DNA of 63,538 nt, filler included, from Ministeria vibrans ATCC 50519 (GCA_943704425.1; 9 parts of 9 records of this genome joined end to end with filler, not necessarily neighbours in it), one strand, 5' to 3'; numbered from the whole stretch's first letter, positions 4,376 to 5,443 are shown. The notes: generated from the letters alone by a model not told the origin. Translations and numbers: made by a program.

Positions 4376-5443
4376 TCATAACTGCTCCCGAAACGAGCTG
4401 CGCAAGAACTGAGGCATCGTGTCGCTGTCCATCAGAGCAAGAATCTCATCGGCCGCGTCGTTGAACAGTCCCACATATTCACCACGGTCAAATCGGTCAA
4501 CAATCTGCAGCACATAATTATGTACATTCAGTGTCAGACACACGCAACACATTCTTTTTTTTCCTTACGGCATTTCGCGTTTCGTGTCGAATATTGATTT
4601 CATTTTCGGACCCTGACAAAATATACTGAGCAAGCATAGCGTGCGCGTCGCGTGACATACACCCATTGCTTGTGTACGACTAGGCAAAAGAAAGAAATAA
4701 AAAGAAAAGAAAAAAAGAAAATCAATACAGACATTAATTTGACGGGGAACCAAGTACCTGAACTGCCTCATAGAAGGAGACATTCTCATCGCAAAAGATC
4801 GACTCGGTATACTTGAAGAAGGCCGCTTGAGCCCGAGGATGAGTGCGCAATACTGTGTACGACGGAGGCGGGTCCGACGAGAGGTCGAGCGACGAGGGTC
4901 TCACATGAATGACGCCCAGTTCGCTCGAGTCGTCGTCGTCAAGTCCATTGCGCTGGCGGTACTCCGCCTCGGCCTGTTCCGTCACTGTCACAAAGACTTG
5001 CTCCAGAGTCGTTTGACTACAACTGTAGTCAAGCACATGGGGCACTCGGCCGTCCTCGATCGCCTCAAAGAAGGGCGCCAGAATCGGCGTCGCGCTCGTG
5101 TGCAAACGGAAGGTCAGCGACATGCCCTTCTCTACACCCTGACGTGAATGCAGTGTCGCGCCTGGAAGAATATCCTCAACAGCAGCAATCACAAGCTCGA
5201 CGCGCTCCAAGGGTACCACCAGCGTCACCATGTAGCCCGAGTACTTGCTCTTGAGATGCACACTCGTGCCCACACACCGCAACTCTCCACGCGCCATAAT
5301 CCCAATCTTGTCTCCGAGAATGTCTGCCTCCTCCATCGAGTGGGTTGTCAGTAGAATCACTCGCTGTGATTTGCGCTTCAAAATCATATTCCACACATCC
5401 CGACGCACATATGGGTCCTACAAAAGAGGCAAAAAAAGATGAA

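Follow-up and report, generated by a model that had tools for sequence, protein, structure and literature searches.

A single mRNA in a marine microbial eukaryote joins a half-size ABCA-type transporter to a C-terminal RGS domain

The genes described here lie in the window, that is, the whole stretch of DNA that was analysed (63,538 nucleotides, filler included), in the order Metallophos (minus strand), ABCA-RGS (minus), 168 bp of spacer, a second half-size ABCA (plus), TsaD/Kae1 (minus) and an aminoacyl-tRNA synthetase (plus). ABCA-RGS is one expressed gene of 11 exons, which runs from 8621 to 4376 on the minus strand and encodes 1045 amino acids, such that a single mRNA joins a half-size ABCA-type transporter to a C-terminal RGS domain. 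Such a module normally switches off G-protein alpha subunits. The features of the locus are as follows.

8460–8621, minus strand: exon 1; ATG at 8621–8619 and 54 codons by sequence reading, with RNA depth in bin 8450–8623; encodes the cytosolic N-terminus, up to and including an ABCA-type basic/aromatic start motif
8088–8459, minus strand: intron 1, GT..AG; zero RNA depth over 8102–8449
7424–8087, minus strand: exon 2; TM1 (aa 55–73) and most of the large extracytosolic loop, which is typical of ABCA (RNA, phase, hydropathy)
6936–7315, minus strand: exon 3; end of the loop and TM helices at aa 311–329, 346–364 and 373–391; part of the ABC2_membrane_3 match
6626–6879, minus strand: exon 4; more of the TMD, with a TM helix at aa 467–485
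6422–6575, minus strand: exon 5; TMD-NBD connector; joints 6320/6421 and 6573/6624 in three RNA runs, ends set to GT..AG
6078–6321, minus strand: exon 6; start of the NBD, a Cys-rich insert and the first half of Walker A
5725–5997, minus strand: exon 7; rest of Walker A (AGKST) and the Q-loop (CPQHD); Pfam ABC_tran, 46.5 bits
5506–5612, minus strand: exon 8; ABC signature and Walker B (Pfam, RNA)
4992–5417, minus strand: exon 9, first part, aa 747–888; D-loop, H-loop (TTHSMEEA) and ABCA-type R/ACT-like domain up to TTLEQVF
4863–4991, minus strand: exon 9, linker, aa 889–931; acidic, Ser-rich and of low complexity, ending in PPPSY
4758–4862, minus strand: exon 9, last part, aa 932–966; first RGS helices with FCDEN (Glu-Asn pair)
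4680–4757, minus strand: intron 9, 78 nt, GT..AG, phase 0; holds an in-frame stop (4734) at which the unspliced ORF terminates
4569–4679, minus strand: exon 10, aa 967–1003, 37 codons; central RGS helices, with an Asn as the counterpart of RGS4 N128
4505–4568, minus strand: intron 10, 64 nt, GT..AG, phase 0; joint 4504/4569 in X1, X5 and X7
4376–4504, minus strand: exon 11, aa 1004–1045 and TGA (4378–4376); last RGS helices, with the Asp163 equivalent and Gln at the Arg167 position
4328–4375, minus strand: 3′ UTR, a minimum extent given by the reach of transcript contig X5
8622–8789, no strand: intergenic, 168 bp between divergent start codons; both first exons transcribed
8790–12147, plus strand: second half-size ABCA (TMD-NBD-R), head-to-head neighbour (Pfam, RNA, exon map)
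8790–8995, 9101–~11387, ~11476–11580, ~11661–11810 and ~11944–12147, plus strand: exons of the neighbour ABCA
3337–3816, minus strand: Metallophos (calcineurin-like phosphoesterase) gene, flanking
12262–14028, minus strand: TsaD/Kae1 tRNA-modification gene, multi-exon, convergent with the neighbour ABCA
14779–15198, plus strand: class I aminoacyl-tRNA synthetase gene, flanking

Nearly all of intron 1 is (CT)n microsatellite in which 'ATCACTTTGTTTCT' units recur, and its real length is uncertain because the assembly has a gap of 9 N at 8248–8256. Repeats of this family also lie in other introns (5653–5685 and ~11830–11930), where they confound read placement.

To establish the structure of the transcript, three RNA runs and one DNA-like run (X19) were compared with positions 4100–9300. 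Each of three studies contributed one transcript contig (X1, 3028 nt; X5, 3205 nt; X7, 3052 nt), and from all of them introns 4757–4680 and 4568–4505, both GT-AG, are removed at exactly the predicted sites. The joints 4504/4569 and 4679/4758 are unbroken in these contigs, which extend through the NBD and TMD exons, and record positions 288/289 and 2834/2835 are adjacent in X5 and X7, meaning that intron 9 has been removed. None of the splice joints occurs in the DNA run X19, which follows the genome colinearly. In plus-strand coordinates the contigs cover the blocks 4328–4504, 4569–4679, 4758–5416, 5505–5612, 5725–5996, 6077–6320, (6421–6573), 6624–6878, 6935–7311 and 7424–8084, and contig X5 continues for a further ~184 nt beyond 8084 at the 5′ end. 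Both phase-0 introns in the RGS part had been predicted in a preliminary description made from the sequence, and the spliced RNA from three studies confirms them, with X1, X5 and X7 joining all three RGS exons. That prediction would have been undermined had the transcripts terminated at the unspliced stop (4734), but they do not: X1 depth over the intron concerned, 4680–4757, is zero. Over intron 4505–4568 we observed a faint unspliced signal, with a depth of 12–17 compared to ~157. The ABCA-RGS stretch was matched under five organism labels and in a seawater metatranscriptome, and several runs contain ~0.7 of its words, as expected for sequence without introns.

All ten introns are GT..AG once joints are moved by 0–2 nt, and an exon-by-exon phase check finds the frame open across all ten junctions, giving 1046 codons including the stop; searches were likewise made per exon. 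As the preliminary description had read it, the frame passes TTLEQVF into the start of the RGS box and continues through exons of 37 and 42 codons. We considered whether adjacent ABC and small RGS genes could have been merged by transcript assembly or read-through, given that a contig spanning two genes cannot by itself prove one transcript. However, one exon (5417–4758) encodes both the NBD/R domain and the initial helices of the RGS box, with no stop or start between them, the frame is open over ten junctions, and the same contig was recovered in three independent studies, all of which make such an artefact extremely improbable. A chimeric assembly of two genes was rejected, given that a single exon spans both parts.

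Small sequence differences were also observed along the gene. Runs X1 and X5 carry G>A at 4397, a synonymous strain difference in a Ser codon of the last RGS exon, and the A-run of intron 4505–4568 differs in length by 1 nt, at 4554–4555, between the assembly and DNA run X19.

The encoded protein consists, in order, of a cytosolic N-terminus, TM1, a ~235-aa loop, further TM helices, the NBD, a predicted R domain, a linker and the RGS box. Hydropathy places the end of the loop at about aa 310, followed by five more TM helices. The TMD matches ABC2_membrane_3 (PF12698) at 45.4 bits, above the cut-off of 31.6 bits, and the NBD matches ABC_tran at 46.5 bits with its ATPase motifs all intact (Walker A, Q-loop, signature, Walker B and H-loop), Walker A being divided by a splice site as GHN/G/AGKST. 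TTLEQVF, at aa 882–888, marks the end of the R/ACT-like domain. A Pfam scan of exon 9 alone gave no PF23321 match, and yet homologues with PF23321 or PF26955 align over this exon, PF23321 carriers doing so at query positions 146–190; its nearest ESM Atlas clusters are R1_ABCA1/ACT_13, and the nearest relatives in a library of 1.84 billion proteins are ABCA proteins with a PF23321 R domain. The ABCA family is best known for lipid movement, and half-size members are known in plants and protists. Since the 1045-aa model has a single TMD and a single NBD, we regard it as a half-size ABCA; the animal-type (TMD-NBD)x2 organisation of full-length ABCAs was not found in it, and a full-length ABCA was rejected for the same reason. 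The earlier identification as an ABCA transporter therefore holds with regard to type, as borne out by Pfam and by relatives, but applies to a half-size rather than a full-length protein. Being half a transporter, a feature that the preliminary description does not mention, it would have to dimerise, bringing one or two RGS tails to each complex.

Exon 6 (about 6078–6321, minus strand) encodes an unusual Cys-rich insert within the first NBD strands, directly before Walker A, that might be a cluster of palmitoylation sites or bind a metal.

The neighbouring half-ABCA, whose intron 8996–9100 is spliced in three RNA runs, stops 8 residues beyond its TTLEDVF and has no RGS tail, whereas the RGS gene runs on for 157 residues. 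Its divergent start codon faces that of ABCA-RGS, and the interval 8622–8789 is probably a shared bidirectional promoter. When compared with full-length ABCAs, the NBD of the RGS gene matches the first half somewhat better and that of the neighbour matches the second half slightly better. These half preferences, along with the shared promoter region, make a heterodimer plausible, and we tentatively propose dimerisation of ABCA-RGS, possibly with its tail-less neighbour, as something that may occur.

The RGS box spans aa ~932–1041 and follows a ~45-residue acidic, Ser-rich linker, to which none of the homologues from the exon 9 and fragment searches aligned. In a six-frame scan of the 29.7-Mb assembly, which read through the first RGS intron, the locus reached 31.7 bits (E 3.4e-6) over PF00615 positions 6–81, compared to a curated cut-off of 23.9 bits. 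PF00615 is also the sole Pfam match of each RGS exon scanned alone, and although each exon falls under the 23.9-bit cut-off, the matches are colinear along the 117 profile positions (6–35, 16.8 bits; 46–74, 13.9 bits; 87–113, 16.8 bits). Judged from these profile scores, the RGS exon signal is well beyond chance.

PDB alignments give a consistent picture of the same three exons. The best matches are residues 27–49 of RGS2, along with RGS8, for the tail of exon 9; residues 67–94 of RGS16 for exon 10; and residues 101–130 of RGS2, along with RGS7, for exon 11. In these alignments FCDEN of exon 9 pairs with FCEEN of RGS2, EINIRHETR of exon 10 pairs with EVNIDHETR of RGS16, and the stretch of exon 11 that carries the Asp163 equivalent pairs with LMENDSYPRFLKS of RGS2. 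Language-model features of exon 11 (ESM Atlas) likewise fall in RGS clusters. By this evidence the tail is a complete RGS domain of R4/R7-like sequence type. The contact residues, in RGS4 numbering, are E87, N88, N128, D163 and R167. Four out of five are kept, namely both members of the Glu-Asn pair together with the counterparts of Asn128 and Asp163, but Arg167 is replaced by Gln, exactly as the preliminary description had it; in addition, Cys occupies the Ser85 position, a residue that RGS2 has there too. Arg167 substitutions in RGS4 weaken G-alpha binding, and the Gln at this position is a real caveat that makes the predicted GAP strength uncertain. Collectively, sequence, Pfam, PDB alignments and spliced RNA uphold the proposed in-frame fusion of an ABCA-type transporter and a C-terminal RGS domain.

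At the end of the linker, PPPSY (4857–4871, minus strand) is a motif of the PPxY type whose Ser-Tyr already lies within the RGS part, and which may have arisen by chance. PPxY motifs are bound by WW domains of Nedd4-like ligases.

RGS domains interrupted by short introns, as is the case here, are easily overlooked in annotation. A survey of diatoms, for example, reported RGS matches that were only 'partial or split' (PMC3727952).

Potential substrates are encoded in the same genome, which has at least three canonical G-alpha genes with a canonical P-loop, switch I (RVATTGI, RVTTSGI), switch II (DVGGQRSERRKW) and NKxD. By analogy with ABC topology, the NBD and all parts downstream of it would be cytosolic, which would place the RGS box at the inner face of the membrane. 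We consider it probable that the tail, tethered to the membrane by a lipid-type transporter, serves as a GAP for G-alpha or as a docking module for G-alpha-GTP. The transporter would act as membrane anchor and localiser for the RGS module, which would bind the GTP form of one of the at least three G-alpha subunits and would most likely accelerate its GTP hydrolysis, thereby damping G-protein signalling specifically at the sites of the transporter. The working unit could be a dimer with one or two RGS tails, for which the divergent, tail-less half-ABCA would be the obvious candidate partner. Beyond the G-alpha genes, this proposal is favoured by the widespread occurrence of membrane-anchored RGS proteins among eukaryotes (PMC3971589). 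It is weakened by the Gln and Cys at the Arg167 and Ser85 positions, and by the precedent of RGS-homology domains that bind partners other than G-alpha, such as D-AKAP2 with Rab4/Rab11 (PMC2781703).

About nine RGS loci are present in the genome, and only the ABCA-RGS locus adjoins an ABC NBD. The closest paralogue (L002; G000:C2358:34919-38389, minus strand 1504–3438) encodes a soluble protein in which an N-terminal region of ~480 aa without a Pfam match precedes the RGS box. It has HEINIRH and the unusual PQFL with Gln in common with the ABCA tail, carries FCEEN, and has a phase-0 intron after RH-x-TR-x-A, exactly at the position of intron 10 in the ABCA tail; at the Asp163 position it differs, with Gly instead of the Asp of the ABCA tail. 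Because L002 shares motifs and an intron position with the tail, the comparison points to a duplication of RGS exons within the lineage onto the 3′ end of the transporter gene.

These substitutions also bear on whether the RGS box has GAP function at all. It might instead be a docking site through which activated G-alpha or another partner regulates or localises the transporter, by analogy with the RGS-homology domains of GRK2, RhoGEFs, sorting nexins and D-AKAP2. The replacement of Arg167 by Gln and of Ser85 by Cys would be in line with such a non-GAP role; moreover, L002 shares the Gln and is without the Asp163 equivalent, so the local RGS subfamily may have drifted from GAP function, and some RGS domains are known to have lost GAP activity (PMC3971589). 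Against this, the ABCA tail retains the Glu-Asn pair as well as the Asn128 and Asp163 equivalents, and its best matches are GAP-active R4/R7 RGS proteins rather than RGS-like/RH families. We therefore think a non-GAP docking role unlikely.

Elsewhere in the genome, L001 (G000:C31:135676-139122) encodes a PXA-C2-RGS-PX sorting nexin with an extra C2 domain (33.8 bits) between PXA and RGS.

We next examined how widely the ABCA-RGS architecture is distributed. A HMMER search with exon 9 against 1.84 billion representatives returned nothing above 49% identity, and the best 150 matches never reach the RGS part; a word-indexed search with fragments of 121–385 aa gave 76 matches with PF00615 in none; and phmmer with the three RGS exons against 246 ABCA-like proteins yielded nothing below E = 1. 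Among the named fragments, the closest belong to oomycetes and an ochromonad, a weak hint of a stramenopile source. A first metagenome scan found no ABC+RGS combination. A second recovered 80 ABCA loci, none followed by a credible RGS match; of the C-terminal tails there that were not trivial, the 20 longest were TMD2, ABCA11_C or unannotated. Querying the ESM Atlas with exon 9 returned only R1_ABCA1/ACT clusters, a search from the RGS region of L002 gave 90 candidates of which none was significant, and the best match to the neighbour ORF was a 33%-identical half-ABCA without RGS from a EukProt transcriptome. Nor did we find a literature report that pairs ABC or ABCA with RGS. The earlier statement that no ABCA-RGS fusion is known thus stands across the 246 proteins, the 80 metagenome loci and the literature searched. 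As evidence for absence elsewhere this is weak, given that near relatives possibly lie outside the searched sets and that the queries were shorter than the full protein. Overall, the ABCA-RGS combination is new among the related sequences and literature searched, while membrane-anchored RGS as such is already known. RGS domains fused to TM segments occur in most eukaryotic lineages and many RGS architectures are lineage-specific (PMC3971589); the surprise is tempered by how common such lineage-specific and TM-anchored architectures are in protists.

The closest homologue found is encoded on a Logan contig with a GC content of 66% (L022:2199-5543). Exons 1–9 are colinear with it at 33–73% identity and the RGS exons are unmatched; shortly after its R domain, the encoded protein (P0033) instead carries a C-terminal PDZ domain (25 bits). 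The homologous gene has fewer introns, and the next gene begins 89 nt downstream on the other strand. Because the RGS tail is absent from this homologue, which has PDZ in its place, it is not an old or conserved part of the transporter lineage, and this absence weighs against the proposed GAP or docking function. Rather, this ABCA lineage seems to take interchangeable signalling modules at its C-terminus, RGS here and PDZ in L022.

A tighter relationship between the two halves of the protein can also be envisaged, in which substrate binding or the ATPase cycle alters the activity or accessibility of the RGS box and the protein operates as a 'transceptor', a ligand-gated GAP that would be a functional analogue of plant 7TM-RGS1 on an ABC scaffold. 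The predicted regulatory domain is indeed directly succeeded by the RGS box, and in ABCA proteins this domain lies beneath the NBDs; the intact ATPase motifs imply a real cycle; mammalian ABCA1, furthermore, is reportedly tied in function to heterotrimeric G proteins (PMC7519545; bioRxiv 10.64898/2026.02.15.705962). However, the ~45-residue acidic, Ser-rich linker resembles a flexible tether, and the exchange of RGS for PDZ in the closest homologue suggests add-on modules rather than an integrated allosteric machine. Because of the long low-complexity linker, simple tethering fits better than tight allosteric coupling, and linker and module swap together favour a modular add-on. Gating by substrate or ATPase cycle is thus speculative and, in our estimation, quite improbable, and we continue to favour an RGS module that is tethered to the membrane by the transporter.

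RGS proteins are usually recruited to membranes by lipid anchors, 7TM bundles or adaptor domains, and here the anchor is an ABCA-type pump. The covalent fusion is strong genomic evidence that both activities share a location. In mammals, ABCA1 reportedly activates G proteins and adenylyl cyclase and is tethered to G-alpha-i by GIV (PMC7519545; bioRxiv 10.64898/2026.02.15.705962). The present fusion serves as a 'Rosetta stone' for these reported links, and a long-suspected connection between ABCA proteins and G proteins becomes directly testable in a microbe with a small genome. At its most far-reaching, the architecture could represent a new class of receptor-like GAP, in which an ATP-driven lipid transporter tunes its own RGS tail by substrate or conformation. 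We consider this a long shot, but if true, membrane lipid status would be wired directly into heterotrimeric G-protein signalling by a transporter that possibly works as a heterodimer with the tail-less, head-to-head half-ABCA.

Comparison with known systems places each part of the protein in a familiar family. With the ABCA family (ABCA1-like as well as plant and protist half-size members) it shares TM1 followed by a large outer loop and more TM helices, the NBD motifs and a predicted R domain ending in TTLEQVF, and its best database matches are ABCA proteins; it differs in being half-size and in its 157 extra residues, linker and RGS, beyond the R domain. The homologue L022/P0033 is likewise a half-ABCA with a signalling or scaffold module after the R domain, PDZ in that case and RGS here. 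With RGS proteins of the R4/R7 type (RGS2, RGS16, RGS7 and RGS8), which provide the best per-exon matches, the tail shares the Glu-Asn pair as well as Asn in EVN/EIN and Asp in D-S-Y-P-R, and like RGS2 it has Cys before D-E-N. In contrast to these proteins, Gln replaces the Arg of D-S-Y-P-R, and the domain is interrupted by two phase-0 introns and attached to a transporter. Finally, as in the 7TM-RGS protein AtRGS1, a polytopic membrane protein bears an RGS box at its cytosolic C-terminus, close to membrane-bound G-alpha. Pfam and hydropathy reveal no AtRGS1-type seven-transmembrane N-terminal domain in the present protein, and the likeness is one of functional analogy only: in place of a 7TM bundle there is an ABC2_membrane_3 TMD with an ATP-hydrolysing NBD, and the RGS box would thus be carried by an active transporter rather than by a receptor-like fold.
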